Of a stretch of DNA of 64,000 bases, positions 1 to 59,536 are shown in pieces. A program made the position numbers and the translations under genes. Every line of letters begins with the position of its first letter. Position 1 is the stretch's first letter. The notes under the pieces were generated by a model. It saw only the letters and a program-made list of their open reading frames with translations, made no database searches and was not told the origin of the DNA. The stretch comes from Botryllus schlosseri (taxonomy: Eukaryota): positions 14,756,001-14,820,000 of the forward strand of contig CM119380.1 in the NCBI GenBank assembly GCA_051294905.1, given 5' to 3'.

Positions 1-314
1 TTTGAAATAGGCAAGTTATAACTATGTTGTCCGGTCACCATGTCACAAGTAGATTTATGCCACTTGTCATCAAAAGCATCATCTCCAGTAACCCATTTTT
101 CCACAGATACTCCACAGCAGTAACATCTTACTCTATCTTGAAATCCTGTCCAATAGAAACCAGCAGCGGCTAGATAACTCGGTATCACAGGAGTTTCTTT
201 CGGAAAATGTTTGAACGTTGCAAGTCTGTAATGTTCAACCCGGTGATCTCCAGGTGGAATATAAATGCAATTATGTCCAGGAGGATCACAATCTCTTTTC
301 ATCAGAATGCCCAT
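1..314 (-). CDS. iap: BIR-domain inhibitor-of-apoptosis-like protein, 3'-truncated by the window edge
   Basis: Manual translation from ATG at 314: MGILMKRDCDPPGHNCIYIPPGDHRVEHYRLATFKHFPKETPVIPSYLAAAGFYWTGFQDRVRCYCCGVSVEKWVTGDDAFDDKWHKSTCDMV... The motifs RLxTF..FP, LAxAGFY..G..D.V.C..C and W..H..C match a BIR domain. The frame is open to position 1. Confidence 0.9.
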   Translation of the reverse strand, partial: MGILMKRDCDPPGHNCIYIPPGDHRVEHYRLATFKHFPKETPVIPSYLAAAGFYWTGFQDRVRCYCCGVSVEKWVTGDDAFDDKWHKSTCDMVTGQHSYNLPIS

Positions 315-554
315 AGTTTCAATTCGGTCGTTTCTCGGTATAATTGCTTTCGATGGAACAGGCGTTCAATAATACAGATCAAAATGTCTAAATATAACCA
401 TATCAATCCAACATTCTAGTAATAATACATAAACATTCTGTTAAAAAAATATATCATTATATAAGATTTCTCGAGGTTCCAAATTAGCATTGGTTCGATA
501 AATTCCATGGATTAGGTGTGAAGTCATTATTTAATCGTCAATATGTAACAACAG

Positions 555-1214
555 TTAATGGAGATGTATGTCCAAAATATAGGAATTTTCCAGATATTGA
601 TTCATTGACTGGGCTTTCTTATCTACTTTCTTCGAGTATATGTATATATATGCATCCATAACGGAGGTATCAGAACTTAACAACATATAACCTTTTACTC
701 CTAGATTGGTTTGGCTGTGCCAAGTCCATTTGCAATTCGCATCTGTAACATAAGCCAGACTATTTGCACATACCAACAATCTTGTATGGCCCATTACTAC
801 TCCTCGTATCACTTCATATATTACTCGTCTCATACATAGGGGAGGTATTCTTCGGACAACTCCCATCAAGGTTTCCGTAATTATAGTCCATGTATCGTCA
901 TCGGGTCGTATTGTCTGTTTATTCCATACTATGAGTCGTTGTCTTGAGGAATCTTTCACAATGGCAGAATCTTGGGAGTCGTCAGAGTCCGTATTACTAG
1001 AAATTTCATCCTCCGGCGTTTCTCCATGGGGTTTCCTGTCGCCACATGGAAGTTGTCTTTTGTACCAATTATGTTCTTGTTCAAAAAAATTTTTCAACAT
1101 ATCCATCAGCAACTTTAGACATCCAGTATTTTTTCGCACGTCGATTTTATCTAGTTGATTCATCAATTTACAAAAAATAGCAGTATTATGATCCTGTACT
1201 TCAGATAGATACAT
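555..1214 (-). CDS. Hypothetical protein, novel family A copy 1 (219 aa from first ATG)
   Basis: Intact ORF. Shares RRVIYEVIRGVVM and W..QTNLGVKGY with the ORF at 4251-4907. Confidence 0.8.
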   Translation of the reverse strand: MYLSEVQDHNTAIFCKLMNQLDKIDVRKNTGCLKLLMDMLKNFFEQEHNWYKRQLPCGDRKPHGETPEDEISSNTDSDDSQDSAIVKDSSRQRLIVWNKQTIRPDDDTWTIITETLMGVVRRIPPLCMRRVIYEVIRGVVMGHTRLLVCANSLAYVTDANCKWTWHSQTNLGVKGYMLLSSDTSVMDAYIYIYSKKVDKKAQSMNQYLENSYILDIHLH

Positions 1215-1490
1215 TTTATCCCTGCGAATATAACAATAATGTGCAATAACAATAAAAGATCCCAATTCAAGATTTCAATGCATCAAATCTCGCTATTAGA
1301 TATCATATAACATGTAATACATTCACTCACTATGATACAACAGTAATATAATCAACTCATATATGTACTTTAATAGAAACATTTCATAGGTTTTTTAAAC
1401 ATGTAGATTATCATACATGCCTCCATTGTTTTCCTAAAGATTCAAATCACTCATATCTGATGATATTGCACATAGTGACCAACATTGTTT

Positions 1491-2438
1491 TCAATGTTCC
1501 AATGTCCTAAAGTTAGGATCAAGAGCAATTATCTCTAAAAATAGTTGAAACCTTTCCTCCAAGGCCACCCTTCTTTTCCAAAGCCACTCCTGTAAGTAAT
1601 GAGGAATAAGTGATCTTGATACCCCATTCAGCCTTCTAATAGCAGCTTTAAAAAAATTCCAAGACACCTCGATCAATTGTGTATTTATGCCTTCTGGGGT
1701 TACAAATTCGCGATCATGATTAACTATTGAATGTTTATAATTCATTCCCAGGTTTTCCAACTTGCGGTAGCTGGCGAATGAATCAGTCCATATAGTGGAT
1801 CCCTCTTTTACGTGTTTCATAATTATTTCTGATAATACAGAGGTTTTTCTCCCTTCTTCAGGTACCAATTCTGCAAACATTTCTCTCGTTTTCATATCTA
1901 TTCCAGCCAAAACCCAGCGTTGGCGTATTATTCTTCCACGATTAAATTTTCTTTTGGCCACAAACGTTTCATCAATTTGAATTACATGTGATTTACCTTG
2001 TGATATTCCCCCTATTAGGGTACCTCTTCTTTCCATTTCCCCAGAGCATATCTTACGAAGTTTCTTGGTCCAATTCACCATTGTTCTCTTGCTGACGTGT
2101 GCTTCAAAAGCTATTTGTCGTTGAGATACATCTATGGTCCAAAGATAAATCATCATTACAAGTTGGGTGAGTCTTATTTTACTTCCTTCAAATAGCGATC
2201 TTTTCCTTATGGACGTGGTAGTCCTGCACTTTGAAACCGGACACCTCCATCTATATCCATCCATAGTTCTTTTGCATTTTTCTTCTTTCATTTGTTGTCC
2301 ACAATTAAAACATGTTGCCTTTTGAACAAGGAGTTGCCGTGATCGCAGAAACTTTATACATTTTCGTTCACTTGATATTATACCACATCGAGCAAGATTG
2401 AATAGATTTTTTCTTTTTCTGGGTTCTTTAGTCTTCAT
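1491..2438 (-). CDS. Merlin/IS1595(ISXO2)-like DDE transposase 1
   Basis: N-terminal Zn ribbon (CFNC...RWRCP..C), SIRKRSLFE, an HTH-like region, and catalytic motifs IQIDET / WTDSFASY / NTQLIEVSW. Intact 315 aa. Confidence 0.9.
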   Translation of the reverse strand: MKTKEPRKRKNLFNLARCGIISSERKCIKFLRSRQLLVQKATCFNCGQQMKEEKCKRTMDGYRWRCPVSKCRTTTSIRKRSLFEGSKIRLTQLVMMIYLWTIDVSQRQIAFEAHVSKRTMVNWTKKLRKICSGEMERRGTLIGGISQGKSHVIQIDETFVAKRKFNRGRIIRQRWVLAGIDMKTREMFAELVPEEGRKTSVLSEIIMKHVKEGSTIWTDSFASYRKLENLGMNYKHSIVNHDREFVTPEGINTQLIEVSWNFFKAAIRRLNGVSRSLIPHYLQEWLWKRRVALEERFQLFLEIIALDPNFRTLEH

Positions 2439-2506
2439 ATTTATTTAGAACTTTATTGTCTTTTCAAAAGTAGTTTCTGTATATACAAACATTGGAAAGT
2501 TAAATT

Positions 2507-3013
2507 TCATGCAGGTATTTTCAAAACCATAAATTGACAATCGGCTTCTTTTATGGTTATTTCCTGCGTCTTCGCCCACGAGTAGATTTGAGCTTCCGGA
2601 AAGATTATCCACATTATGAGATCTCTTTCAGAGTCTCCTTTTTTTAGAAATTCCCGCATTTCAGGATTTACTCTTTTTAAAATTGTTACCCAGTTTATGC
2701 AGATTTCTGCAAAAGCCATTTGTATAGGTTTTTCAGGGTAAATGCTTCCTGTATAAATTTCTTCCCACTCATCTTCAACCAGATGTTTCCCAGGCCAATG
2801 ATTATTACATGTAGTAAGACCATACTTTTGCTTCCAATATTGCAGCCGTGGATTTAATTCGTCGTACATTATGTCACATAAATGATCCGTTAATGTATAT
2901 GTTGTTAACAGAAACTTCAGCGACTTTAATCCTTTGTCTATTAGTGTTTCTTTTTGGGGTATCCATATCAAATGTTGTATTTCCGGATCATCACAACGCA
3001 ATCCCAAACACAT
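2507..3013 (-). CDS. Hypothetical protein, novel family B copy 1
   Basis: Intact 168 aa ORF. MCLGLRC, NPRLQYWKQ and WIIFPEAQI match MCYGLLC, NPRVQYWQQ and YVLYPEAII in 6286-7146. Confidence 0.8.
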   Translation of the reverse strand: MCLGLRCDDPEIQHLIWIPQKETLIDKGLKSLKFLLTTYTLTDHLCDIMYDELNPRLQYWKQKYGLTTCNNHWPGKHLVEDEWEEIYTGSIYPEKPIQMAFAEICINWVTILKRVNPEMREFLKKGDSERDLIMWIIFPEAQIYSWAKTQEITIKEADCQFMVLKIPA

Positions 3014-3115
3014 TTTGATACTTTATTATGTTATACTATACAAAATATATAAGATCAGTTACCTATTGCCATGTTACAATACTGCACCGAATTTCAATAT
3101 TTATACTTAAGCATT

Positions 3116-4156
3116 TTACATTAGTCTAATAGTAACTAGCCAAACACTAGCGGCAAATGTACATTTTGAATGTATAGTCACGGGATTGGAAAAACTTTTC
3201 ATTACATCATAATATAATCTTGATTGTTTACGAACATAGGGTCTTTTGGTAGACGTTCCATTATTATATCCATTTAATTTTAAAACCTCCAAATATGGCA
3301 ATTTTCTCCGTAGAGAATCACTCAGAAATTGAACATGATTATAACTAAGGTCAATAGTATGTAAATATTTGAACGATGTGTTGGAGGACAGAGAAAAATA
3401 TTGCAAGTTATTATAATACAACGTTAATCTCTCTAAATTACACAAAGATTCAAGTATTGTCATATCAAATTCCACCAGTTTATTTTCATCCAGGTTTAAA
3501 GTTTCCAGTTTACTCAGTCCTTTAAACGCCCCTTCTTCTATAGCGCTTATTGCGTTTCTTGATAAGTCTAGTATTCTTAAACGACGTAAATGAATGAATG
3601 TTCCGTTCTTTAGTTTCTTTATGACATTGTTGTCCAAATATAGTCTTTTTAATTTTTCCATGCCTGCAAATTTTGATCCTTCTATTTCTGCCAGCAAATT
3701 ACTGCTCAAGTACAAACTTTCCAGTTGGTGTAAGCCTGCAAAGCTTTCTTTTTCAATTCGTGTGATGTAGTTTCGTATCAAATTTATCTCCCTAAGCTTT
3801 TCGTTTTTGCAGAAGACTCCTCCTGGTATGGTTTGGATTTTATTCCACCCACAATGCAACACCTCTACGTCTTTATACTTTTCCAATTGTCCTTTGGTTA
3901 TTTCCCGTAGGCAGCTGTCGTTGATGAATATCTTTACTGTGTTCCGGCAAGATTTTGCCAGGTATATCTTGTCAGGATCTGGAATCCTTGTATAACTCGA
4001 ATGATCACACCAAAGTACCAAATTGCTTCCTTGCATGCATTCCGGGTATAACATAGTTCGTCTTTCATTCTTTGTACATTTCTTTTGTTCTATTGTTTCC
4101 GGATAAATAGCATAACACGTGCCCAGCCATAATACTAGTAGTTCCACTCGGTTCAT
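3116..4156 (-). CDS. Signal-peptide leucine-rich-repeat protein (secreted or surface)
   Basis: Hydrophobic N-terminus MNRVELLVLWLGTCYA, a Cys-containing cap, and about 8-9 repeats of LxxLxLxxNxIxxIxxxxF. No canonical LRRCT cap, transmembrane (TM) helix plus tail, or TIR signalling domain. Single ORF. Confidence 0.88.
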   Translation of the reverse strand: MNRVELLVLWLGTCYAIYPETIEQKKCTKNERRTMLYPECMQGSNLVLWCDHSSYTRIPDPDKIYLAKSCRNTVKIFINDSCLREITKGQLEKYKDVEVLHCGWNKIQTIPGGVFCKNEKLREINLIRNYITRIEKESFAGLHQLESLYLSSNLLAEIEGSKFAGMEKLKRLYLDNNVIKKLKNGTFIHLRRLRILDLSRNAISAIEEGAFKGLSKLETLNLDENKLVEFDMTILESLCNLERLTLYYNNLQYFSLSSNTSFKYLHTIDLSYNHVQFLSDSLRRKLPYLEVLKLNGYNNGTSTKRPYVRKQSRLYYDVMKSFSNPVTIHSKCTFAASVWLVTIRLM

Positions 4157-4250
4157 TTTACTTATGAATTAGATAATTCACTTTGTTATTTTACTCCTTT
4201 GAAAAAGGTTTTTTGTAAGTCAAAATCTTATTTACATTCGTTGTCATTAC

Positions 4251-4907
4251 TCATAATTGTTCCGGTATTATAGAGTCAATGTTCACACTTTCCCCTCCGT
4301 AGGGGTAAGGGTGTATTTCTATACGCCTTATCCTTTTTGTTCGCCAATGTATTGAACTTGAATAGCCTTTTATGCCCAAATTATTCTGACAATTCCATTG
4401 TTCCATATGCGGCGGATCTTTACAAATTTCTCTCTCCTGGTACACGTCCTTTGTTATATTAGTGTTTGTAAGTTTCATCACCATTCCTCTAATTAATTCA
4501 TACAACATGACTCTTCTTCCCAAAGAGGTGTATTCCTTTGCTCTTATTTCAAATATCTCATCTACAACATGGTTGAATTGTTCAAGAATTTCTTCGGTTA
4601 ATTCCTCATCTAGGGCTACCTCTTCTAGGCCATTGTCTGTTTGTTTAACCCAATCAACTCGGTCCGTAAGCAATTCCCATATTGTTTCTTTAAACTGGTA
4701 TCTCTCATATTCGCTGTTATATTCTTTAAGATTCAATAGATCCAATTCGTCATATACATCGTACAAAAGACACCAATTTGTTGGATCGTAACCTTCAATA
4801 TAATCAAAATCTAGCATTCTTTTTTTTCCTTTCTGCATCAAAATATACAGATTTTTTTCAAACAAAATAGAAATTTCGCACAATTTACCATTTTCATGTA
4901 TACTCAT
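4251..4907 (-). CDS. Hypothetical protein, novel family A copy 2
   Basis: Intact 218 aa ORF. RRVMLYELIRGMVM and W..QNNLGIKGY are shared with 555-1214. Confidence 0.8.
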   Translation of the reverse strand: MSIHENGKLCEISILFEKNLYILMQKGKKRMLDFDYIEGYDPTNWCLLYDVYDELDLLNLKEYNSEYERYQFKETIWELLTDRVDWVKQTDNGLEEVALDEELTEEILEQFNHVVDEIFEIRAKEYTSLGRRVMLYELIRGMVMKLTNTNITKDVYQEREICKDPPHMEQWNCQNNLGIKGYSSSIHWRTKRIRRIEIHPYPYGGESVNIDSIIPEQL

Positions 4908-5249
4908 ATAAACTCATGTATACTCCATACTCGTTAAGACATTTATCAATTCATTAATCACCCAATACTTATTAGGCAATAAATCTCTCCCCCCCACAAG
5001 GGATTTAATTATTTTGTAATTTTCTATTTTCTGGTTTTTATTTATATACTTTTTTTTCTCATTAAGATTTTATCTCGTATATAGTTTTTATCCTTCGGTT
5101 TAGGTAATAATTTTATCAATTTTTATGATCTATAAACATAATCCGACATTTTATTTTTTTGAAGATTTTTTTAGTGGGGAAAGTTATACAACATATCAAC
5201 TTAAACAATAATAAAAAGTGATATTACTCATCATCCCTGCCTTCCCTTT

Positions 5250-6165
5250 CATAAGAAATTTTTAGACACGAGTATCTTTGAATGACAAAAAATTTTCAAG
5301 GGTCATTAATACAGCGTTGTCCATAACAAGTAATACACCACTATGTCTCATAGGGATTAATAGAAGAAGGGTGCCAAGAGACAGGAATGTGAGTAATCAG
5401 CGAAGTATTACTCTACAAAACTAATACATATTTAAGTATTGGATACAATACTAGAGGTTAAGTCCATTATTGCGCATGTTATGTACAGTACAATAAATAT
5501 TTACATAATCGGAAAATATTATAAAATCAGCAATAACATAAATAGCAGCAAACTGGTATGAGGCTCATACAAAGAGATTTGGCAGAGCGACAATTTTGGG
5601 CAAAATGAAAAATATTAGCTCACGTCAGCCTTTATATAATTTAATTCGATTAGCATTACATTTAAATAGTGAGCACGAGGTGATTTGAGGTAGGATAGGT
5701 AGTCTGGGGCCATTACAGATTATTTTCAACACAAAATTGCAGCCGAAAACACGTACATAACATACAATATTATGGGAAATAGACATCGTACAGTTCCTCA
5801 TAATTTACAATAACAAGTTCCTCTCGAATTTAAAAAGTTTTTGCAATAAAGATAGGTCGATCTTGCATTCAAGTAATCAAGTTCTTATAATCCCCGGGTT
5901 GTTATTCTAGGGGAGGTGGTAGTGGGTACAATCCCAGCGATTGATCAATGTATCGAAATCTTTTAATAAAAAGGGAAACTGTATTAAAATCTGAGTATAT
6001 ATATAGTAAAATACAGGTATATAGTTTTTACTTTTGCTAGTCTCAAGTTTCCACCATAACCGGCTTTTATGCTTTTTCCCGTTAAGTTTGACTTTTGGTA
6101 GTGGTGCCGAATTGATAAGTTGTCCTAAACCACCACCAGTCAGCCCTAAATAATTCAGTTATCAT
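5250..6165 (-). pseudogene. Decayed ORF of unknown family
   Basis: One minus frame runs from about 6000 to 5700 with only sparse stops (IYSDFNTVSLFIKRFRYIDQSLGLYPLPPPLE*QPGDYKNLIT*MQDRPIFIAKTF*IREELVIVNYEELYDVYFP*), with apparent frameshifts on either side. Boundaries are approximate. Confidence 0.3.
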
Positions 6166-6285
6166 GGCTTGTCTAATAGGCTAGCCCTAAAAGTCCAAAT
6201 CAACCTATCCCATAACAAATATTACGTCTCTGACGTGTTTCCGAAGACAATTTCTAAATCAAACTAATAGTAGCTTATTTTCAAA

Positions 6286-7146
6286 TCAGCCCATTTTACC
6301 ACTAAAGGCAGCATGGGGTCCGTCTACACTGGGCCTCCGTAAAACTATCATTCGGGTTGGAGCCTCTAGTCTGTTTGGAAACCTACTGTCTCTACTGGTC
6401 GAAGACTCAATATTAAACAACGATGTAGTTTCCGAATTGGTATTTTTGACTATTTGTTTGTCACCCTCTTTTTTTAGCGAGTTTTCAAAGATTGATTCCG
6501 ACACTTGGTCAACCGGTAGAATAAAAACACCTCCCACATAACCAAACGTACTCGTGGACCCGTATGTAAATCTCCACTGTTCTAGATTTCCCCCAAATAG
6601 GAATTCAAATTCTGCATCCATCCTGCACCTCGTAAAACAAAATGTTTGTATGTTTTTTGCCCCCCGATATTGTTGCAACAGGAGAGCTATGGCGGTTATT
6701 ATCGCTTCCGGATATAACACATAAAGTACTATATGTCCTTTATCTATTTCGGTGTTTTGATCTAGTCCTTTGTGCATACTACAAGCTTCTTTTAAATAGT
6801 CATGGCATAATGTCATAAGTTCCAAAATCTGCCCGGTATTCTTGAAGTACGGTCTTACGTGCCTCATAAGGTAACATTGTTTACATTCACCATTCCCAAC
6901 AGGGTGAAAAAGCTTTCCTATTTTTGTCCAGCCCTCCTTGTTGTACATACATTGTTGCCAATATTGCACCCTTGGATTGTCCCGCTCACAAGTGCCGAAC
7001 AAGAGGCTCATCAAACGATCCCGAACCGGCGCAGTTTTTATGGTTTCCATTACCATCTGCTGCCTTTGAGTAAGAGTGAACTGCATTGCCCACTCGTAGA
7101 CAACCTTGTGATCCGTATTAGGGTTGCACAATAGCCCGTAGCACAT
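6286..7146 (-). CDS. Hypothetical protein, novel family B copy 2
   Basis: Intact 286 aa ORF with ATG at 7146 and TATAAATA about 25-30 nt upstream. Paralogous to 2507-3013 with a longer C-terminus. Confidence 0.8.
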   Translation of the reverse strand: MCYGLLCNPNTDHKVVYEWAMQFTLTQRQQMVMETIKTAPVRDRLMSLLFGTCERDNPRVQYWQQCMYNKEGWTKIGKLFHPVGNGECKQCYLMRHVRPYFKNTGQILELMTLCHDYLKEACSMHKGLDQNTEIDKGHIVLYVLYPEAIITAIALLLQQYRGAKNIQTFCFTRCRMDAEFEFLFGGNLEQWRFTYGSTSTFGYVGGVFILPVDQVSESIFENSLKKEGDKQIVKNTNSETTSLFNIESSTSRDSRFPNRLEAPTRMIVLRRPSVDGPHAAFSGKMG

Positions 7147-7329
7147 TCCTTTCTTTAACTAGTTCACTATTTATAATCTTAATACAAGATAATTCCTCGT
7201 CATTCATAATACACTTTAGGCACAAGTTAATAACCTAACTTTTATTCACCATAAATTCAGTCCATATAATTGATAATATTCACATCATTCCACTGAATAT
7301 TTTAGTTAAAACGTTTTATTGTAATTTCA

Positions 7330-7848
7330 TTATTCGTTAACGTGATGCGATGTTGTAGGTTGAGGCTGATTAAAGGATGATTGTTGCGAAAACATTATAC
7401 TACCAAAAGATGCATAAGTTCCATTTGTCGTGACATTGTTATTAGGCGGTGCATCATTGTTTGTAGTAGATGATGTCAGAGAGGACGTCAAGGGAGTATT
7501 ACTTGTCGATGTCGAAGAGCTTGCTCTTATCTCTGTGTTCCGATTCTGTTTGTTTGAGGCAGTTTTTATTAGCAAATATGGTTTTACTTTTGCTACCTTG
7601 CGATTTCGCAAGTGTTTTCTACGATAGTCATTTCGCCATGGCCATTCTTTGACCTTTTCATTACTCGCTCCCATTCCTTCGAAGAAGATTTCTGCATAAC
7701 GTCTAGTTCCATTTTTAATGTCCTCGAAAAAATCATTCCATCGTTGTAATCTTTCTGTCTTTTTCACCCCCCGAAGTTCCTCATACCATAGTTCAATATT
7801 TTCAATAGATAGCTCCCATAATTGTTCTTTAGTTATTGAGGCAGACAT
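7330..7848 (-). CDS. Hypothetical protein with Trp-rich N-half and Ser/Thr/Asn low-complexity tail
   Basis: Intact 172 aa ATG ORF, co-oriented with its neighbours. No family recognised. Confidence 0.65.
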   Translation of the reverse strand: MSASITKEQLWELSIENIELWYEELRGVKKTERLQRWNDFFEDIKNGTRRYAEIFFEGMGASNEKVKEWPWRNDYRRKHLRNRKVAKVKPYLLIKTASNKQNRNTEIRASSSTSTSNTPLTSSLTSSTTNNDAPPNNNVTTNGTYASFGSIMFSQQSSFNQPQPTTSHHVNE

Positions 7849-8868
7849 TCTTTAATTTACTGCACCGCGTTATTTTTACACCTTAAAAAATAATAATGTT
7901 TCTTTCAGCCGAGCTTATCGTATGATATCGTTAATGATATTTCAAACACTGAATTTTGTTAACTCTTTATTAATCCTATTTGGGGTTAATTATTTCTTTA
8001 CTGGATAAGGAAAAGTGTAATCTCTGGCCACTTGAGATGTGATGTCTAAAATATCTATTCCGACGTTTTGGCAGAGGCGTCAGCCTGTCACATAATGGTA
8101 TATTTTTATACATTACAATAAATCAGAGTAGTTTGCTCCAGATTCATCAAAAGTAAAATTCTCTACAAGCTCAACGCGACACTTTGTCCCTCGATTCCTT
8201 GTTTTTAATATTGCTGCCCCTTTTTTTTTTTATCATGAAAAACAGCCAATTTACTTAGATTGAGTCTAACTATACTCGCAATTTCGGGACAAAGTGCCGT
8301 TGAACATGTGTGACCTTACATTTGCGTTTGCAGTAGATACTGCTTACTATGAAACCTATGCACGTAGAGATTGACGCATGTTGGTCTCAGCTACTTGCGT
8401 TATCCATATGTCCATGCGCTGAATAGCCTATTCCTCATAGACTTAGCCCAGCGATATGCGGTAAGCCCGCAACAGGGCCTAGTTACAATATCCTTGGCCT
8501 ATGAATTTCTAAAGTTTTTTCGCGTTTCACGAGGTAGTGGCCTGTACAGTATTTCGTTAATCGAATGTGTCCCTTAGGCTGAAAAAGGTTAACCAGCCTT
8601 GACTAAACCAAACCTTTATTTTGTATCACCTACCAACCTAATTGTTCTCTCTTTCTTAAAGTCTGCTGAATAACCTATTATTATTCCATGGCTACACAAG
8701 AATTCTTTTTTTCAAACGAAAACACATTCGTCCACAATATGTAATTGTTTCACTATGAAGCACAGAACACATAACATATCTTGTAACAGTCGCAACATTG
8801 TCAATGCTCATTTTAAGATTTTGCTGATCACACCAATTTGTACATTTTAATCATATAACTTTCCGATT

Positions 8869-9390
8869 CTACTCGTTACACCGGGGGCGCCAAAATATTC
8901 TATCAAGGCGTCTGAGAGTGGCCTCGTCAAGAGGTGGTAACTGTTCATGATCTGAGGATAGATCGGAATCGCTACTATCAACTCCAGAGTCAGTGTCGGG
9001 TAGAGTATTCAGACTCTCATCCGAGTCTGTAAAATCACCGGACTCGGAATTCGGATAAGGTCCCGATTCATGATCTGAGTAAAAATAGGATTCCATATCA
9101 TCATGTCCAGACTCAGTATCCGACGAGATACTTAAACTATCATCCGAGTCGGTTAGATCTAATTCCGAATCGGTACTATCTCCCCAAATCGAAGGATTTC
9201 TTTCAAAATAGCTTTCCAATGTGGCCTCGTCAATTTGTTGATCATTTTCCTCATTTTCATCTGCTTCAGGCGATGTTTGGCATGATTTGAGAATTTCATC
9301 TATATTTTTTAATACCACAATCCACCTCCCGGTCCAGATTTGTTCATCCAGAACAGAGGGCTCCATGGCCTCAGCACTTGTCATGGCCAC
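8869..9390 (-). CDS. Acidic Ser/Asp-rich protein with internal duplication
   Basis: 173 aa ATG ORF with repeats TDSDDSLSISSDTESG / TDSDESLNTLPDTDSG and IDEATL / LDEATL. TATA-like sequence lies upstream at about 9430. Confidence 0.65.
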   Translation of the reverse strand: MAMTSAEAMEPSVLDEQIWTGRWIVVLKNIDEILKSCQTSPEADENEENDQQIDEATLESYFERNPSIWGDSTDSELDLTDSDDSLSISSDTESGHDDMESYFYSDHESGPYPNSESGDFTDSDESLNTLPDTDSGVDSSDSDLSSDHEQLPPLDEATLRRLDRIFWRPRCNE

Positions 9391-16096: not shown

Positions 16097-16159
16097 TTAA
16101 TTCTACTGTATAGCAGCGTTGGAATCTAGTCACTTCCTCCGGCACTGCAGCATAGCCTT

Positions 16160-17808: not shown

Positions 17809-20800
17809 CTATCTCAGTTTTTCGTGCAATGTTACTGCTGTAATATACGTCTTTCGATTATTCCGCCGAATAACATCCCTAAGATAAGTTTTTGCTGCGA
17901 CCCTCCTGCATTTCGCATAACATAAATACATACATCCTACCATTATTGTTACGAAAACCGCAAAAATCAAGGCATTGTTAAGTGATTCTTCTAAATCCTT
18001 TCTATTGTTAATATCAACAATAATTTTACCTGCTGCATAACCTTGTTCCATTTCTTGTAGTTTGTGCAGTCGTCCATAGAAGTCAAACGTAATTTGGTCC
18101 AGTCTGTCATATTTGGTCGTAGGTAAGGTATGCGGTATACTGAGTGTATCTTTTCCTTCTTCTTCGATAGAGGGTGTAATTGAAGAAAGTGCACTATTGG
18201 AAGCACTCTTCCAACTTCTGATCACATCATTGTTACTTACTGATGTGGATTCGCTCTGATAGTCCCCTGATGAAAGTATTGATGTTGATTTAGTTCTTAC
18301 CTGTAAGTCTTGCTCATTGTTTAAATTATCTAGTTCTGTATTAGAGCGGGACTTGCTGGTGGCGAAATATTGGTGCGTTTCGACTGTCGTTGCTACTTGG
18401 GTTGTATCAAACAGCACATTGAAATGCGCTCTTGGCGATGTTGTGTCCATGAGTTGATTTGTGTGATGACGTAATTGAATATAAGACTCAGGTATCTGCG
18501 TAACCTGGGGTGTTTTCCTTATTGGCACGGATAAGGAGCCTAACATTTCATCATTTTTTGAGGGTATTTGATAGGTCATGGTATGCTTCGCGATTACTCC
18601 TCTTTCCATTGGTACACGCGTTGTTAACCCACTTTCAGAAAAGGTGACTCCTGTTGTAGCAATACCATTGCTTTGCTGAGTGTCCATCTCTGTTGATATA
18701 GCCATAGATGGTTCCACAATTGTGAAAATATTAGTGGGACTCGTTCTGCGTCTTTCTTGATCACTAGTAGTTTTCACTGTAGTTAAGAATGTAGTAATAG
18801 ATGTAGTTGGTCTTGGGCTGGAGTTATCTTCGCGTGGGGAATGCACAGTAGTCAATATGGCTGGGAGCGGTGTCGATGAAGTCGTTCCGGAAATTACAAT
18901 GGCCGATGTCAACCCTCCAGTATATGGTGTGATTGCAGCAGTGGATAATGTGGTCGTAATACTATCTGTCGTAAGTGTAGACGTTCTTGGCGTGGAAATT
19001 GTTGTATCCCTTGTTAACTCAACCGTATATTGAGTATTTTTAGTCGATGTTGGAGTTTCAATCATTGGTAACGCCATTGTAGTTTCAATAATATTTGTGG
19101 AATCTGTAGTGTGAGCTACGGGTATGGGCCTACGTTTTAACAAAACATCATATTCTCCGTCTTGGTCATAGTAATCGTAGTAGTAATTTCCAGAGTCTTG
19201 AAAGCTAGTATTATCGTCATAACCGGCATAGCTAAATCCTTCGTCATAACTTTCTATATAATCGTAGTTATAGTGGTTAGTATTGTATTGATTCGTCATT
19301 CTTACATTTTCCTCAGTAAGTGTTATGGTTTTTTCCCGTGTCACAGTGGGTCCTGGAGTCGCTACAACAGAAGTGATATCATCCCACATACCAGTCTCGC
19401 TACTAGGAGGCACTCCTCGAGTGATTCCTTCGTAACTTACAGTCCTTGTCGTTATTGTTTCCGCGTTACTTCGTGGCATTACGGAGCTAGGAGGTACTTT
19501 TCGAGTGGTTCCTTCATAACTTACAACCTTTGTTGTTATTGATTCCGCGGCACTTAATGGCATTTCAGAGTTAGTTCTGATTTTGTTATTGTCCTTATAG
19601 GCATAAGGCGTATACACCAATATTCCAGCACATATTGTGGCTGTGTAGGCCACACTAGGTCGGAATATCCGGATATCATGAAACTGCACCTCTATGAGCT
19701 TGCGTGTTGACATATAGCTCAGTAACTCTTCATTTATCTTACTAAGTTTCTGAGGTGTCAAGGCTGACCGTAGCGCCTGACTTAGAGACTCCATCTCTTT
19801 ACCAGTTATGGACCTGTCCAATCTCCCCAGTTTTCTTCGCATTTTATATATGGGCAGGGACAACTGGCGTAAACGCCGTTTCGTTACTTCTACGTAATAC
19901 ATTCCTAGGCGAGCTAGATAATAGTCCATATTCCTTGTATTTTGCCCATTGCTTTTAAATGATGCAGTCAGGATAAAGTCACCTAATCTACCGGGTTGTT
20001 TACAATTGGGTAGACTCTTAGGCCATGCTTTGAGTGGAGATTCCTGACCTGCAGGTCTTGGAGATGCAATTTGTAAACGACCGTTGCCATGATCTGCATA
20101 CACGGGTTGATTTGTATATGGATCATATAACACTTCCTTAAAGGCCAACGCCGTTTTTAAACTTCCAATTGAATTACGACAAACCTTCTTATTTTTTTTG
20201 CGTTCACATTCTATGCTGCCTTGCAATATAGTCGGAAAATTTCTCTTCCCCATTATCCGTTGAGTATCATTATTTAGATGTTCGCGAAGGGCGTAAATCC
20301 TCAATCTAAACCAAGTATGACCATCAAAGTTCGCTGGCCTCTCCCTGGGGCCTGTCTCATTTCGAGCCTTCAACCACACGATGTCGTGATGTAATTCGGG
20401 TAATTTGACTCCTGCTGGCCATTGACTGTAGGAGTAAGCTTCTTGCGTTCCCATCCCTGATCCTCCGATGCTATTATCTATTTCCATGATCACAAAGTCT
20501 CTGGACAGTATATTTACTGCCAGATCATCTGTGAAAAATGAGCATCCTAGGCATTGTATCTGATTAGCTTCTCCTTGCACACATACGTTAAATTCGGCTT
20601 TATTGACTCTCCATCCCATGATATCCTCTGAACGCTGCTGGCACCTTGTTGTCACTGTTGCATATTGCGCCAAGATATTCATCACTGATAACTTGTACAC
20701 CGTCAACAGCTGGTGTATAGTAACTTGTGGAGTAGCATTAGGAGAGATCATCCGAAGAATAGCCCTAGGCACAGCCATAGTGCCGCGTGCTTCCCTTCCA

Positions 20801-21279
20801 ACCACATACTTCCATGTATGTATTAAACCAAAGTTATTCTTTCGACGATATGTTGTGGTTCTAGTCAAGGCTGCCAACGTAATATCGGGAGATATTCTTG
20901 ATAGTTTCCGATTGCACCCGCATTCTCTTTCATATTGTCTAACATTATTCCAATACCTCTTGTCAGACCCCGAGGGTGCAAATAACTTGTACAATTGATC
21001 TTGGCTAGCTCGTGTTGGACCAAATTTGGGCGTCTCTTCGTATATTGAAAAATTATTTTCCGTTTCACCTATTGGCCAACTCTCGTTTAATTTGAATAGT
21101 CGATTAAGGCGGATGTATCTAAGACTTTGATTCCGGAACGTTGTCCATCCTGTAAGATTAAATGCTAACCTCACACTCATAGCAGATAGGGGCAATAATT
21201 GGCCATGAATTTGCAGATATCCTCGGTGTAGTGTTAAAGCTACTGCCAGCACAATCCATAATTTAAAGTAACGATTCAT
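17809..21279 (-). CDS. Type I membrane glycoprotein with Cys-containing head, mucin-like stalk, TM helix and short basic tail (putative attachment protein)
   Basis: Signal peptide MNRYFKLWIVLAVALTLHRG and N-glycosylation sequons. Thr/Ser/Pro-rich region at about aa 570-1045. TM ALIFAVFVTIMVGCMYLCY. Intact 1156 aa single ORF. Confidence 0.88.
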   Translation of the reverse strand: MNRYFKLWIVLAVALTLHRGYLQIHGQLLPLSAMSVRLAFNLTGWTTFRNQSLRYIRLNRLFKLNESWPIGETENNFSIYEETPKFGPTRASQDQLYKLFAPSGSDKRYWNNVRQYERECGCNRKLSRISPDITLAALTRTTTYRRKNNFGLIHTWKYVVGREARGTMAVPRAILRMISPNATPQVTIHQLLTVYKLSVMNILAQYATVTTRCQQRSEDIMGWRVNKAEFNVCVQGEANQIQCLGCSFFTDDLAVNILSRDFVIMEIDNSIGGSGMGTQEAYSYSQWPAGVKLPELHHDIVWLKARNETGPRERPANFDGHTWFRLRIYALREHLNNDTQRIMGKRNFPTILQGSIECERKKNKKVCRNSIGSLKTALAFKEVLYDPYTNQPVYADHGNGRLQIASPRPAGQESPLKAWPKSLPNCKQPGRLGDFILTASFKSNGQNTRNMDYYLARLGMYYVEVTKRRLRQLSLPIYKMRRKLGRLDRSITGKEMESLSQALRSALTPQKLSKINEELLSYMSTRKLIEVQFHDIRIFRPSVAYTATICAGILVYTPYAYKDNNKIRTNSEMPLSAAESITTKVVSYEGTTRKVPPSSVMPRSNAETITTRTVSYEGITRGVPPSSETGMWDDITSVVATPGPTVTREKTITLTEENVRMTNQYNTNHYNYDYIESYDEGFSYAGYDDNTSFQDSGNYYYDYYDQDGEYDVLLKRRPIPVAHTTDSTNIIETTMALPMIETPTSTKNTQYTVELTRDTTISTPRTSTLTTDSITTTLSTAAITPYTGGLTSAIVISGTTSSTPLPAILTTVHSPREDNSSPRPTTSITTFLTTVKTTSDQERRRTSPTNIFTIVEPSMAISTEMDTQQSNGIATTGVTFSESGLTTRVPMERGVIAKHTMTYQIPSKNDEMLGSLSVPIRKTPQVTQIPESYIQLRHHTNQLMDTTSPRAHFNVLFDTTQVATTVETHQYFATSKSRSNTELDNLNNEQDLQVRTKSTSILSSGDYQSESTSVSNNDVIRSWKSASNSALSSITPSIEEEGKDTLSIPHTLPTTKYDRLDQITFDFYGRLHKLQEMEQGYAAGKIIVDINNRKDLEESLNNALIFAVFVTIMVGCMYLCYAKCRRVAAKTYLRDVIRRNNRKTYITAVTLHEKLR

Positions 21280-21365
21280 ATTATTATAAATTAGTTAGTA
21301 TATCTGTGGACTTATGAAAAAATTAAATTAATAAAAGTAAAATCCTTTAAATATATATGCGTGCA

Positions 21366-23882
21366 CTACATTTTTGTCGATTTGGTTGTTTTAACGGGGG
21401 TCGATACCGATGATATGTACATTGTCAACTGAGTATTCGTGTTCCGCCGTTGTACCTTAGGTTTTAACTTAGGACAGCAAAGACTGCTATAACGACAGAA
21501 ACAAAACAAGATGATCCCGGCCCCTAATATCAAAATTACTGGAATCAGAACAGACCCCAAGCCAGAAAAAATTCCGTTCACTCCCTTACTGAATATTCCT
21601 CCGACCGCACCTAGTCCTTCTTGTAGTAGATTTCCTGTACTCTCTCCTACAGATTTTATCAAGCTTTCGGCACCGTGTGTCATGTCTTCTATCGTTTGGC
21701 CCAAGTTTTCCATAAATTTTTCTCCTCCCACGAATTCGAAAGGCTTCACTGTAATATTCTCATATCGCCAATCAGAAATGTTCATGTACACACTCTTGTT
21801 CAGATCTTCTCTCCAAACTTGCAAACCCAAATCCACATTCTGTTGGGTTTGATCTATATTGATACGATTGGCACGTAGTTCCACTCCGATGTCATTCGTC
21901 TCATTGATGTAAGCGTCTCTATAGGCTGTTAATTGCTGAGCATGCTCTTTTATCCGTAACGTTCCTTGCCGGATTTTCGTGAGATATACCTTGCTGGAGT
22001 CAAATATTAACTTTCCAGTCAAATTAGCCAATTCGTCCAAAACCAATCGGTCGATGGCTAATTCGGCATCACTCATTTCCTTATAGTTTTGAAAAGAGGT
22101 CAAAGAAGCTGTTGCTTGTCGTATTATCATTTGTCGATTTCTTTCTATGTACTTTTCCATTAGTACAAGTCGTTTATCTGTCAGTGATGTCCTTACTTCC
22201 ATGGCAGCGATCGTTTGATCCAGTTTTTGTTGTTGTGCTATTTGAAGTAACGAGAGCTCGTTAATCTTTCTCCCTAGTGCAGTGGACCTCTGTGTGGCCT
22301 GTATCATTCTATTATTGATCTGTTGGCTAAGGTTCACCGTCTCTTCATGTAACTGGGAGGAAACTGTCGCAACGACGGCGATTGTGGATATTACGGCAAA
22401 CACAAGACATATTAGTCCAGACAGAAACCTTTTACGTCTTCTCCGCGCACCCCTTTTGGTACCAGCTCTCGATGCTATTTCTCCCTTAATTTCTATCGGG
22501 CCTCCCGGGAAACGTGGTCGGTTTAGCTCCGGATCAAAATGAACATGGTCCCAAAAGGCTGCCTTTAAAACGGGTCCACCCACTGGGTCGCGACACAAAT
22601 CCTGGTTATGTGATATTCTATTTTTACATGCTTCATCCGATGCAGTAAGAGAGGGGAAGTGTTTCCACATGGGCCTGGGAAAAGGTATCCATGTTGATAT
22701 AGATGCCTTAAACCTAGTCGGCACACCATCAAAAAGGTTATTCCACCTCATGCCCTGATTGCCGCGATTAGCATACACACTGTGATCCAAATTTGGAAAA
22801 GACGGTTGTATCCATTTTACTCTAGGAGGGAAATTTGTCGTTGGTAGATCACCCCATATAGTGGTATTCATTCCAGGCCAGAAATTGCACGAATGGGCTA
22901 TTACCCCACCATCAGGCCAGAAGTGCTCAAACCAGTACTGATTAATCCATCCCCCCTGGGCCCGGCATGGAATGAACTTATTGCGCATATACGGCCATGT
23001 ACTTATTGTAGTCATTACTATTTCTTGGATGATTATATCTGCCTTATTTGGTTCCAGAGCAGAAATCACTCCTCTAAAATTACACCTTGTACAGATTCCT
23101 TTTCTGACCCCCTTTACCCTCCAAGAGTGGTATTGTTGCCAAAAAACACTATGGGAGGCATAATCTTTATCTACTAGATGCCAGCATTGTGTAAAACTAT
23201 TGCTACTGGCATTATACTTATTTAATTCACTTAATTTTTCTTTGTCCCCGTCTCTCATTGGCTCTTGAAGACATGAGGCTTCAACAGCTGAATAACTTTC
23301 GAATAGTCGTATCATAATCAATTTAAATTTGGTAAGAGCAAACATGGAGTAATTCCTGCCAAGGTCATGATACCAGTAATAGTCCCCATTCCAGAACCAG
23401 CGAATCCTATAATACCCTATTGGACGTATGAACATGTTTGTTTGTTTAAGAACATCATAGGAAATATTGGGCGTGATCTGGCCCAGGCGCCGTTGACAGA
23501 GACAGGTGCGTTCAAATTCTTGTACACTTGTCCAATATCTTCCATGTGGAAACGCCATTTGTTGTAATGAAAAACGCTCAGCTACTACGTAACCAAATGA
23601 CTTGCTGTAAAATAGCTCAGGCCGTCTATATACATGTCGCTCCGCCGTTTTGTTGAAAATGCTCATCAAGTGATAGTCCTCCCATTGTGTATCATTTAGA
23701 GTGATCCATTCTTCAGGCAGGGGTCCCCGTAGTTCCCCTAGCGTCCCCTGAGTGAAAGACCGTGCCCTATTTGTTACAGGATCTGCAAGTCCGTGCATGC
23801 CTTTCGCCGCCGTATGCAGCACCAAATCAGACGTACAAATGATACCAACAAGGATAGACAGAGAATAAGGAAGGATGTCCAT
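21366..23882 (-). CDS. Class I viral fusion-type envelope glycoprotein (838 aa from first ATG)
   Basis: Signal peptide MDILPYSLSILVGIIC. Multibasic site RRRRKR (22428-22445) is followed directly by the hydrophobic peptide FLSGLICLVFAVISTIAVVATV. Then long heptad-like helices, a Gly-rich membrane-proximal segment, TM VLIPVILILGAGIILF, and a Cys-cluster tail FCFC..LCC. Confidence 0.88.
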   Translation of the reverse strand: MDILPYSLSILVGIICTSDLVLHTAAKGMHGLADPVTNRARSFTQGTLGELRGPLPEEWITLNDTQWEDYHLMSIFNKTAERHVYRRPELFYSKSFGYVVAERFSLQQMAFPHGRYWTSVQEFERTCLCQRRLGQITPNISYDVLKQTNMFIRPIGYYRIRWFWNGDYYWYHDLGRNYSMFALTKFKLIMIRLFESYSAVEASCLQEPMRDGDKEKLSELNKYNASSNSFTQCWHLVDKDYASHSVFWQQYHSWRVKGVRKGICTRCNFRGVISALEPNKADIIIQEIVMTTISTWPYMRNKFIPCRAQGGWINQYWFEHFWPDGGVIAHSCNFWPGMNTTIWGDLPTTNFPPRVKWIQPSFPNLDHSVYANRGNQGMRWNNLFDGVPTRFKASISTWIPFPRPMWKHFPSLTASDEACKNRISHNQDLCRDPVGGPVLKAAFWDHVHFDPELNRPRFPGGPIEIKGEIASRAGTKRGARRRRKRFLSGLICLVFAVISTIAVVATVSSQLHEETVNLSQQINNRMIQATQRSTALGRKINELSLLQIAQQQKLDQTIAAMEVRTSLTDKRLVLMEKYIERNRQMIIRQATASLTSFQNYKEMSDAELAIDRLVLDELANLTGKLIFDSSKVYLTKIRQGTLRIKEHAQQLTAYRDAYINETNDIGVELRANRINIDQTQQNVDLGLQVWREDLNKSVYMNISDWRYENITVKPFEFVGGEKFMENLGQTIEDMTHGAESLIKSVGESTGNLLQEGLGAVGGIFSKGVNGIFSGLGSVLIPVILILGAGIILFCFCRYSSLCCPKLKPKVQRRNTNTQLTMYISSVSTPVKTTKSTKM

Positions 23883-24011
23883 GGTACAGACAGTGGTGGT
23901 TCTCGCCACGTCATAAACTAAATATAATCGCGCACTAAACCTAGACTACCGTCTGTAAAAACACAAAATAACAGATGTCGTCATTTCCGTATTGGAACCT
24001 TATAACGGGGT

Positions 24012-24977
24012 TCACAAATGTGGTAATACAGGAGGCCCATCAAATTTGTCAAGATTATACCGTGGATCATTGTGTATGGTGCGCAGGAGTGCCAAGAATC
24101 GGTCAGTCTTTTGATGTTGACGTTTCCACAAAAACTCCCCTACGTAGTCGGCCAAAAGATGACGTGCTAGACCACGAGATCTATGTAAATGATATTTAAG
24201 CTGGCCCCAGGCCCCCTCGATTTCATTAGTACAAAAAGCTGTCCGAGGGTCCTTAAACCAACGGGAGTGGTCCACTACACCGTGTATATAACCCTTCCCC
24301 CAGCTCTCTATGCCCTTGTAGGAAGGATAGGCATCGGTTAGAATCGTGGACCCCTCTGTCACATTTTCTACTATGAGTTTTCGAAATACTTCAGCAGTTC
24401 TGTCAGAAGTTATTTCAATGAACATTTCTCCGGTGGCTTTGTCTATTCCTCCAAACCCCCAAATGGCTTTAACAGCTGGTCCTTTACCAGAGGCAGCCCG
24501 GCGCTTGGCTAAGTGCGTTTCATCAATAATCACGCAACCGCCTTCCTTTCCCAAACGTCGCTTGTTCCTGTGAAATTCGGCCGTACACAGCTTTCGCAAT
24601 TTGCCGCACCAGGTAACCGTTGAACGCTGGCTAATCTCAGCTTCATGCGCGATTTGGGTTTGCAATGCGTCATGGGCCCAAAAGTAGAATAAAATCAACA
24701 ATTTGGGAAGTTCTACCTTACTTCCTGCGAATATCGAGTTTTTCCGTATAGTCGCCGTTGTATCACACGGATTGCATCGCCATCTAAATCCATCACCGCC
24801 AGTGGTCGTAATTTCTTCATTCATTATTTTTTTACATCGTTTGCATTTCATCCTTCGCACCAACAACCCGTGATTTCTCAGAAATAGCACACAATCTCGT
24901 GTTTTTAGTAGTGCACCCGATTCGACCAGACTCAACACATTGTATGTTCTTCCCAACGTATCTGCACAAGTAAACAA
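24012..24977 (-). CDS. Merlin/IS1595(ISXO2)-like DDE transposase 2 (start codon uncertain)
   Basis: CKRC...RWRC..C Zn ribbon, TIRKNSIF, and catalytic motifs IIDET / LTDAYPSY / TNEIEGAW. The first in-frame ATG is only at 24851. Confidence 0.88.
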   Translation of the reverse strand: MFTCADTLGRTYNVLSLVESGALLKTRDCVLFLRNHGLLVRRMKCKRCKKIMNEEITTTGGDGFRWRCNPCDTTATIRKNSIFAGSKVELPKLLILFYFWAHDALQTQIAHEAEISQRSTVTWCGKLRKLCTAEFHRNKRRLGKEGGCVIIDETHLAKRRAASGKGPAVKAIWGFGGIDKATGEMFIEITSDRTAEVFRKLIVENVTEGSTILTDAYPSYKGIESWGKGYIHGVVDHSRWFKDPRTAFCTNEIEGAWGQLKYHLHRSRGLARHLLADYVGEFLWKRQHQKTDRFLALLRTIHNDPRYNLDKFDGPPVLPHL

Positions 24978-25195
24978 GACAGTATGTGGCGTTCATCAAC
25001 TCTTTATCGTCCTTTGCGGGTCAACCCTTCTTTTTCTTGATACATCATATGTACTGATTCTCTCATATTTTAATCCCGTGTTAGTCATATGGCAGGGTCA
25101 TTTTTTTCACTTGTTCCTTACCAGACCTGGTGATTTTTTTACCCCTATTTCAATGTACATGTACAACACCTACTATCCTACAACACACCCACTTT

Positions 25196-25558: not shown

Positions 25559-25821
25559 GTATAATTGACCATAGGCGCCTAAATGACAATCTGAACCTCA
25601 CGAGACAAATAGGCTACCATACCGCAGGGAAGAATTATATGCCGGTGAAGAACTACCAATTTGAAATCGTGTGTATCTTATAGGTTAGTACGTTTGGGCG
25701 ATTGTATATTTTTTGATATAGCAGACTGGAGGTCACGAAATAACATCATGTAACGAAGTCGAACCAACGGGTCCGCCTGTCAGAATATATTTAATTATTA
25801 TTTACGGGCCCTATACAGTTT

Positions 25822-55364: not shown

Positions 55365-55498
55365 TGTAGATAGTAATTGTATTAACAGAATCAGTACAGG
55401 CAAACTTAGTCCGACCCACCACCGCCGCCGCTCTCACGTTCTCCCCACACCAGTGCCTCTCGCAGGTCCTGGTGCACATACAACGCATGCAAACCACA
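55365..55498 (-). repeat. 3' LTR
   Basis: Identical to 59403-59536. Confidence 0.97.
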
Positions 55499-55575
55499 TA
55501 CCCCCCTGATCTCAAGATCAAAAGCAAACGAAATGAAACAAATCACTAAACAATGCAACAAACTATAATATAATG

Positions 55576-58500: not shown

Positions 58501-58683
58501 TTGCTTACACACGTCTTCTCGCACCACTGATCTCTGGCAACCACTATCAACGAGAGCTTCTACAGATATTCCAAATATTTTTACAGAAATGATTGGCAGC
58601 ACCTTTTTCCTCACTGTCGGTGGCTGGGGAACCCATCCGATGCTGACCGTTCCCCATTGCCGTTTCCCTGATTGATTGGCCAT
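55576..58683 (-). CDS. pol: Pol polyprotein (protease, RT, RNase H, integrase), expressed by -1 frameshift
   Basis: Motifs [44 protein letters not shown] Zn finger, LALD / ILSDNG / VERNHR. Uninterrupted. Confidence 0.96.
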
Positions 58684-59387
58684 GTAGCACTGTTCTTGCA
58701 GAACCGAGCTATATGACCAGGGTTACCACATTCAAAACACTTTATTGGCGGCAGCCCACGGCCATAACTCCGTCTCCCAATATCCCTATTTGGGCACTCG
58801 CGTGCTATATGTCCATCTTTCCCACAAGAGAAGCACTCAAAAGTCTTTCTTTTGTATGTGCCAGCTGCACAGAGCATGCCAACGGGCACTGGGGTGGACA
58901 TGATCATTCTAGCTCGTACCACCAATTCACCAATTTCCAGTTTCTCAATTTCAGCAAGAGACTTTAGCTGGCATGCCACATCGATCGGCAGCCCAGTCAC
59001 AAAAGCGCACTTTACTATCGGTTCAGAAGCAGCAGGGTCCATACCCACAAGAGTAACCAGTCTCTGGAGGTCAGCTACGAAAACATCAACACTCTCACGT
59101 TCTTGAAGAGTCCTGCGCCGAAACTGGCAGTAGGCATCGTAACAATTGACGCCAAATGCTGCCAAGAGAGCAGTCTTTACTTTACTGTACTCCTTTTTAT
59201 CCTCATCACTTAATTGCCTATATACTGAGAACGCCGCAGTGTCCAACAATAGAGGAACATATTCTTCTGGCTTGTTACCTCGCAGTTTCATAACGGTCTC
59301 AAATTTATCCAGCCACACAGCCACATCCCCCGAAGTAGCGAAGTCCACATACATAGGCATAATGTCCGTTATCCTCACCGTCGACAT
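58611..59387 (-). CDS. gag: Gag with two CCHC zinc knuckles
   Basis: ATG at 59387 (MSTVRITD). Knuckles [14 protein letters not shown] and [14 protein letters not shown]. Confidence 0.95.
58662..58668 (-). promoter_or_regulatory. -1 ribosomal frameshift slippery heptamer G GGA AAC
   Basis: The gag frame reads CAG GGA AAC (QGN) and the pol frame TCA GGG AAA C (SGK). pol is -1 relative to gag. Fits X XXY YYZ. Confidence 0.85.
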
Positions 59388-59402
59388 ATTGCCGCGATAG
59401 CT

Positions 59403-59536
59403 TGTAGATAGTAATTGTATTAACAGAATCAGTACAGGCAAACTTAGTCCGACCCACCACCGCCGCCGCTCTCACGTTCTCCCCACACCAGTGCCTCTCG
59501 CAGGTCCTGGTGCACATACAACGCATGCAAACCACA
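59403..59536 (-). repeat. 5' LTR
   Basis: Identical to 55365-55498. Confidence 0.97.

Follow-up and report, generated by a model that had tools for sequence, protein, structure and literature searches.

F, a predicted fusion glycoprotein gene

We analysed a stretch of 64,000 nucleotides of Botryllus schlosseri DNA (assembly GCA_051294905.1, contig CM119380.1, positions 14,756,001 to 14,820,000 of the forward strand), referred to here as the window, which carries on its minus strand a gene that we call F and that encodes a predicted class I-type fusion glycoprotein precursor. In the window F lies between an ORF (open reading frame) for an IS1595/Merlin-like DDE transposase and a second glycoprotein gene, G, and the features of the locus are collected in Table 1. 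The longest form of the uninterrupted F ORF, 21366-23909 (-), begins with GTG and encodes 847 aa, while the ATG at 23882, taken as the start in a preliminary description of this DNA, stands in a Kozak-like context (ACCATGG) and gives a product of 838 aa. Residue numbers counted from the GTG equal those counted from the ATG plus 9.

The product has the layout of a type I membrane precursor, with a predicted signal peptide and a C-terminal transmembrane (TM) anchor. Its hydrophobic segments lie at the N-terminus, at residues 493-521 and at the membrane anchor, 776-812 (GTG numbering), where AlphaFold2 (AF2) places a TM helix at 785-808. The polybasic motif RRRRKR occupies residues 480-485 (ATG numbering), at about 58% of the protein length, and the 20 residues that follow it have a mean hydropathy of 2.62. 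Class I fusion proteins have their priming site directly before a hydrophobic peptide or close to it, and cleavage is predicted here. The distribution of Cys is strongly uneven along the chain: 12 precede the site (8, 25, 136, 138, 213, 242, 273, 276, 315, 341, 428 and 439), one lies in the fusion peptide (501) and the only others are found at the border of the TM segment and the cytoplasm (803, 805, 811 and 812, all in GTG numbering). The helical ectodomain between the fusion peptide and a Gly-rich stem, about 255 aa long, is free of Cys. Gly makes up 23.5% of residues 735-785, and N-x-S/T sequons number 12, divided equally between the two sides of the cleavage site.

The preliminary description had reported RRRRKR directly before a hydrophobic peptide starting at residue 486, a post-cleavage ectodomain with a single Cys in the fusion peptide, a Gly-rich membrane-proximal segment with a Cys-cluster tail and an intact gene, and the ATG-numbered translation, the Cys positions, the Gly content and the uninterrupted ORF bear out all of these. 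It had also proposed that F is possibly still functional, as the integrity of the ORF and its conserved motifs may suggest.

The F family

Searching a word index of 5.8 billion proteins returned two relatives of F, P0001 (62% identical) and P0002 (32% identical at 94% coverage). A profile search over all 1.84 billion representatives extended the family to 48 relatives at E ≤ 0.001, among them 18 at E ≤ 1e-30. All of the 20 that were looked up came from ENA, Logan or JGI metagenome-type assemblies, with no named protein and no annotated genome record among them, and the IMG/VR viral contigs and JGI metagenome contigs that were scanned held no F relatives; when alignments were broadened, they offered no stretch with enough conservation to be used in such scans. 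The literature search found no description of the family or of a Merlin-linked envelope element. No database names the family, and judged by its sequences it would be a class I-type family so far undescribed.

About 20 relatives span the region around the cleavage site, at 15-65% identity, and they have R-x-K/R-R followed by a hydrophobic peptide, with 242-281 aa between the cleavage site and the TM segment and no Cys in this interval in nearly all of them. Because these traits recur at such divergence they are characters of the family and not products of chance. Conservation among the three closest F sequences peaks immediately ahead of the site, at residues 409-476, where there are invariant columns, and across the family the region of the predicted turn and beta-hairpin has an invariant G155 and a nearly invariant Y148 (numbering of a 291-residue piece of F). 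Whole copies of F are present in the window and in two of the fetched loci, L001 and L004, while the homologue is in three pieces (two breaks) in L005, in two pieces (one break) in L002 and truncated in L006.

Predicted structure of F

All structure models of F are of monomers. AF2, run on the full protein with a 33-sequence alignment, gave a mean pLDDT (predicted local distance difference test) of 61, and it modelled the N-terminal subunit as a mixed alpha/beta fold in which large parts of 110-300 and of 410-470 reach pLDDT 85-95. Beyond the cleavage site the model has, in order, a helix (521-611), a short helix (614-630), a beta-hairpin (640-659), a second long helix (661-704), a Gly-rich stretch of low confidence and the TM helix; a separate model of residues 495-785 (pLDDT 66) keeps the same order of elements. 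For helices 521-611, 661-704 and 731-753 the family alignment shows hydrophobic residues recurring every 3.55-3.6 positions, with a power that none of 2000 column shuffles reached.

F recurs beside a transposase and in the env position of retroelements

About 130 nt separate the transposase ORF from the ATG of F, which lies downstream of it, and the transposase has relatives that are 54-75% identical to it. G begins 86 nt downstream of F, and both of these intergenic gaps (86-130 nt) carry AT-rich TATA-like boxes. G has neither an R-x-K/R-R site nor a fusion peptide, it has a C-terminal TM anchor, and its residues 600-1000 form a mucin-like stalk with 25-35% Ser+Thr. An orthologue of G, P0023, is collinear with it over 560 residues (E 2e-23), including the helix and beta-hairpin motif, and a word-index search with the G head domain found nothing. 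From its sequence G is a probable attachment glycoprotein.

The same order is seen among the relatives. The P0003 contig has a transposase, F and a further ORF, L004 has a transposase then F, and in L006 a B-like ORF stands between the transposase and F and gives the faint PWP3A-B_C signal that the B ORFs of the window also give; on the P0001 contig F is followed by a long ORF, which we read as the F-G order again. Identities to the window are 54-55% for the transposase and 34% for F on the P0003 contig, against 36-39% and 27% in L004 and L006. Transposase identity thus rises with F identity, which points to co-inheritance and argues against chance insertion. In L005 a tight array of genes on one strand (542-8220) lies upstream of the split F homologue and encodes a 973-aa protein, MATH/TRAF-like, UQ_con E2 and BIR+RING products, the last resembling inhibitor of apoptosis proteins (IAP-like); the 973-aa ORF has no relative in the PDB. 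BIR genes thus occur near F in both the window and L005, and by analogy the array recalls the gene content of large DNA viruses of invertebrates.

A second setting was found in more distant relatives. In L001 (4105-14331), L002 (2971-12256) and L008 (721-11563) the F homologue follows a zinc-knuckle gag and a pol with protease, reverse transcriptase and RNase H (PR-RT-RH), and neither an integrase nor long terminal repeats (LTRs) were found in these three retroelements. The reverse transcriptase of this type of pol is nearest, among solved structures, to the caulimovirus polyprotein 8r0s (E 3e-20), and the pol C-terminus resembles RNA 2'-phosphotransferase (Tpt1/KptA; PDB 9ld4, E 4.5e-7), with a weak Pfam PTS_2-RNA signal in L001 and L002. 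An ORF with a CUB domain lies between pol and env in L002 and L008. The retroelement of L001 is flanked by inverted repeats of nearly 4 kb (1-3963 and 17910-21868) that are 99% complementary and have small ORFs in each arm; as the locus cuts off at the start of one arm, the arms may be longer, and they may belong to the element or be a palindrome of the host.

The statement in the preliminary description that no gag-pol lies upstream of F consequently holds for the window copy but is incomplete for the family. The impression of an orphan gene that it gave does not stand, as F sits in a conserved transposase-F-G unit inside a dense block of virus-like genes.

Other features of the window

Beyond an ORF-poor gap (9400-17800) nine more intronless ORFs lie on the same strand as F, and we take them, provisionally, as belonging to the same element. 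The two transposases of the window are 38% identical and of different lineages. Together with the A and B ORFs they make three diverged pairs of paralogues, which suggests two nested or adjacent copies of the element or an internal duplication. The intronless ORF for a secreted leucine-rich repeat (LRR) protein may be a captured host gene.

The ORF-poor gap contains tandem repeats, with two 120-nt units at 16160-16399 and three 49-nt units at 17377-17523, as well as one copy (9773-9852) of an 80-nt dispersed repeat, other copies of which are at 30533 and 63534. Nothing coding was seen for 30 kb upstream of 24977, and the ORFs between 24900 and 36000 do not look like coding sequence. Scanning the window for Rfam families and for tRNAs gave no matches. 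A compact LTR retrotransposon with 134-nt LTRs that are 100% identical, a gag with two zinc knuckles and a pol with DUF7047 looks like a recent insertion unrelated to F.

Table 1 Features of the window, with their positions, strand and the evidence for each
Feature	Position	Strand	Evidence
F, intact putative class I-type fusion glycoprotein precursor, 838 aa	21366..23882	-	Collinear with full-length relatives P0002 and P0003, 94% coverage
F, predicted signal peptide (roughly residues 1-27, ATG numbering)	23802..23882	-	Hydrophobic N-terminal segment
F, N-terminal subunit resembling a retroviral surface subunit (SU-like), about 460 aa, 10 Cys, 6 N-glycosylation sequons	22446..23801	-	AF2, alignment
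F, polybasic furin-type site RRRRKR	22428..22445	-	Sequence; R-x-K/R-R kept in relatives
F, hydrophobic putative fusion peptide directly 3' of the cleavage site, with a single Cys	22347..22427	-	Kyte-Doolittle segment 493-521
F, long N-terminal helix resembling heptad repeat 1 (HR1-like), about 90 residues	22077..22349	-	AF2 helix 521-611; sub-model 2-117; family periodicity 3.55
F, short helix and beta-hairpin at the predicted turn	21933..22070	-	AF2 helix 614-630, strands 640-647 and 650-659; conserved columns
F, second long helix (HR2-like), 44 residues	21798..21929	-	AF2 helix 661-704; periodicity 3.6
F, Gly-rich membrane-proximal segment, low model confidence	21555..21707	-	23.5% Gly
F, TM helix whose cytoplasmic end has a Cys cluster (putative acylation sites), then a short basic tail to the stop codon	21474..21557	-	Hydropathy, AF2
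IS1595/Merlin-like DDE transposase ORF, upstream of F	24012..24977	-	Pfam DDE_Tnp_IS1595 9e-10
G, 1156-aa paralogue of F	17809..21279	-	Paralogy E 2e-7 over the head domain; orthologue P0023
Rest of the one-strand intronless ORF block	1..9390	-	Putative part of the same element as F
BIR-domain ORF, running off the left end of the window	1-330	-	Resembles the BIR-RING gene beside the L005 F homologue, tblastn E 2e-8
A2	555-1265	-	Paralogue of A1, family A E 1e-4
Second IS1595/Merlin-like transposase	1491-2438	-	Pfam 1e-16
B2	2507-3013	-	Paralogue of B1, faint PWP3A-B_C signal
Secreted LRR protein, intronless, 346 aa, hydrophobic N-terminus	3116-4156	-	LRR_8 E 2e-40
A1	4251-4907	-	Paralogue of A2
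B1	6286-7146	-	Paralogue of B2
ORF	7330-7848	-	Part of the one-strand block
Acidic protein	8869-9390	-	Part of the one-strand block
Compact LTR retrotransposon, 4.2 kb, self-contained, gag and PR-RT-RH-integrase (IN)	55365..59536	-	31 kb from F, not linked to F

Searches against known families

Window F has no match in Pfam even at E 10, and no real family was recovered when F, G and 33 family members were searched. Weak signals below the cut-off were present in relatives, namely Baculo_F (E 0.56, a single relative, over its TM region), Foamy_virus_ENV (1e-5, in the TM/anchor region only) and Spike_torovirin (0.027). A phmmer search of F against PDB sequences found nothing. Foldseek against viral fusogens, the check that had been proposed, gave no significant match: nothing fell below E 0.06 with the full and fusion-subunit models against the PDB or with the full model against BFVD, and the fusion-subunit model came closest to generic helix-hairpin proteins, V-ATPase subunit D and prefoldin among them.

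Interpretation and proposed mechanism

The sequence of F, its conserved characters and its gene order make it probable that F encodes the fusion glycoprotein, class I in type and from a family not yet described, of a virus-like mobile element. F would be synthesised as an N-glycosylated type I membrane precursor that has a signal peptide, and a furin-like convertase would cut it after RRRRKR to leave a surface subunit of about 460 aa and an anchored subunit of 353 aa with the fusion peptide at its new N-terminus. As the ectodomain of the anchored subunit has no Cys, the subunits would have to associate non-covalently. Upon triggering, the N-terminal helix of about 90 residues may extend and insert the fusion peptide, after which the chain, reversing at the short helix and beta-hairpin, would allow the second long helix to pack back into a hairpin. 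The Gly-rich stem would make the protein flexible, and the Cys residues clustered by the inner leaflet would be acylated. G would have kept the head domain while losing the cleavage site and fusion peptide and gaining a mucin-like stalk, and it is a likely attachment partner of F. The IS1595/Merlin-like transposase may supply integration in the lineage of the window, and the PR-RT-RH polymerase may be the replicative enzyme of the distant lineage.

Several observations weigh against this reading. F has no significant sequence or structure match to any solved or modelled viral fusogen, the fusion-subunit model is of moderate confidence (pLDDT 45-85) and the monomer models do not establish a trimeric coiled coil. 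The long helices that had been described as heptad-like are supported as helices by AF2 and by the family periodicity, but the single-sequence heptad score is not above that of shuffles, and a period of 3.55-3.6 fits plain amphipathic helices as well as heptads, so that it is no proof of a coiled coil. No gene for a capsid or any other virion part was recognised in the window. Searches for terminal inverted repeats or LTRs bounding the F unit found none, the inverted repeats seen around 14000-27500 and within 1-32000 not exceeding chance level, and without terminal repeats the extent and mobility of the element are not established; it may extend beyond the window. The transposase beside F could in principle reflect repeated independent insertion.

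That F is instead a domesticated or orphan env of the syncytin kind, left by a retroelement that lost its gag-pol and now serving the host in cell-cell fusion or restriction, would agree with the intact ORF, the lack of an adjoining gag-pol and the distant relatives that are env genes of retroelements. We think this unlikely, as F is not alone: the order transposase-F-G recurs in relatives that are only 27-34% identical, the spacing of the genes is of viral style, a paralogous second glycoprotein has been inherited together with F, and the family is rare and patchy, with split or truncated F in three of the fetched loci. Still less probable, and in our view very unlikely indeed, is a host type I membrane protein with coiled coils that is processed by a convertase and is no fusogen. 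The failure of any fusogen family to match F would be expected of such a protein, and long helices and furin sites are not unique to viruses, but in about 20 relatives the hydrophobic peptide stands exactly at the new N-terminus, F homologues fill the env slot of retroelements in L001, L002 and L008, and none of the 20 matches looked up came from an annotated genome record. A clear match to a non-fusogenic host family, which the preliminary description had named as counting against a fusogen, was not found for F in Pfam or among PDB sequences.

Membership of an existing class I family at a very remote distance is also improbable. The most plausible candidate would be influenza haemagglutinin (HA) or haemagglutinin-esterase-fusion (HEF) protein, and otherwise a foamy-virus or nidovirus spike S2-like protein, to which the sub-cut-off Pfam signals given above would point. 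The F family profile has a marginal match to HA0 chains (E 0.002), in an alignment running from the conserved Cys/Pro/Gly block through the polybasic site into the first helix, and it matches HA2 chains (residues 45-90) at E 0.02-0.15. In both proteins a conserved Cys/Pro/Gly block lies just ahead of the site and cleavage falls directly before the fusion peptide (in F by prediction), and a long helix followed by a short helix and a beta-hairpin, as predicted for F, resembles low-pH HA2. However, the top matches are exactly those HA chains that have a polybasic site, and the score is inflated for that reason, the match losing significance when the polybasic site is left out of account; HA is absent from the best 50 Foldseek matches listed for either the full or the fusion-subunit model; and whereas HA has a disulfide between HA1 and HA2 and further Cys in HA2, the Cys-free ectodomain of F makes such a bond impossible, and its 44-residue C-terminal helix and Gly-rich stem are additional to the HA plan. 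We therefore treat the marginal profile match as a lead and not as membership of F in the HA family. A distinct fusogen lineage, as the preliminary description had proposed, is supported by the architecture, and no known family claims F.

For the wider locus we entertain, as a possibility with rather less than an even chance, that the window holds part of a virus-transposon hybrid DNA element. Such an element would combine an IS1595/Merlin DDE transposase, a class I fusogen with a mucin-like G and genes for manipulation of the host (BIR/IAP-like and secreted LRR), with the same fusogen family present also in retroelements that have no integrase or LTRs and have a PR-RT-RH-Tpt1/KptA-like pol. 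If so, this would be a second and independent exchange of env between DNA elements and retroelements, beside that of baculovirus F and errantivirus Env. The locus may then show a mobile element pairing a Merlin-type transposase with envelope genes, and the family could serve as a marker for gene exchange between retroelements and DNA elements, in hosts that are probably aquatic invertebrates or protists. For structural study F would offer a new and compact class I architecture.

Comparison with known envelope systems

The overall plan of F is close to that of retroviral and lentiviral Env composed of SU and TM subunits. Both start with a signal peptide and a large surface subunit, both have a polybasic furin site placed so that cutting there puts the fusion peptide first in the next subunit (in F by prediction), and both continue with a helical TM subunit that is anchored in the membrane and has acylatable Cys. 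Relatives of F occupy the env position after pol; the non-covalent association of subunits predicted for F would be shared with lentiviruses. Unlike retroviral Env, F lacks CX6CC and every other form of Cys loop, and no motif in it resembles the immunosuppressive domain. Its TM ectodomain, at about 280 aa, far exceeds theirs in length and is predicted to turn at a beta-hairpin. Neither TLV_coat nor GP41 of Pfam matches the family. The gamma-type retroviral TM (TLV_coat) does not fit F, given the lack of CX6CC and of any Cys from the fusion peptide to the TM segment in F and nearly all relatives. As for the window copy as the env of an LTR retroelement, no gag-pol was found within 31 kb of F and no flanking direct repeats, and tblastn with the pol proteins of L001 and L002 detected no decayed pol upstream.

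With baculovirus F and errantivirus Env the family shares, by prediction, the logic of a class I protein primed by furin and, as observed, the occurrence of one fusogen in both retroelements and a non-retroviral element. In these proteins and those of paramyxovirus type, together called F-type Env, the cleavage site is near the N-terminus and a large Cys-rich globular head follows it, whereas the globular part of our F precedes the site. F does not fit baculovirus F/errantivirus Env, as the preliminary description had also concluded for this type and for gamma-type TM: window F has no Baculo_F match, its subunit sizes are reversed, with the cleavage site about 58% of the way along the chain, and the predicted helical part that follows lacks Cys. 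Paramyxovirus and pneumovirus F were likewise set aside, with no such structure among the Foldseek matches listed (PDB, BFVD) and no Pfam match. When Ty3/gypsy elements with an env were surveyed across animals in 2026, the only envelopes encountered were F-type and gB-type (PMC13524379), and the layout of F is neither.

Hybrids of viruses and transposons are known from Teratorn, which joins piggyBac and a herpesvirus (PMC10175614), and Mavericks bearing fusogens have been described (10.1101/2022.07.12.499685). The F unit differs from both in that its enzyme is IS1595/Merlin-like and not a piggyBac transposase or an rve integrase, in that no capsid, polymerase or packaging genes and no terminal repeats were recognised with it in the window, and in that its fusogen is predicted to be class I-type and not gB-type. 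It resembles them in placing a DDE-type integration enzyme beside envelope fusogens within a block of intronless ORFs on one strand of an animal-type genome. Next to the F-type and gB-type envelopes the F family would thus represent a further type, combining an SU-TM layout with a Cys-free fusion subunit and occurring in two very different genetic settings.

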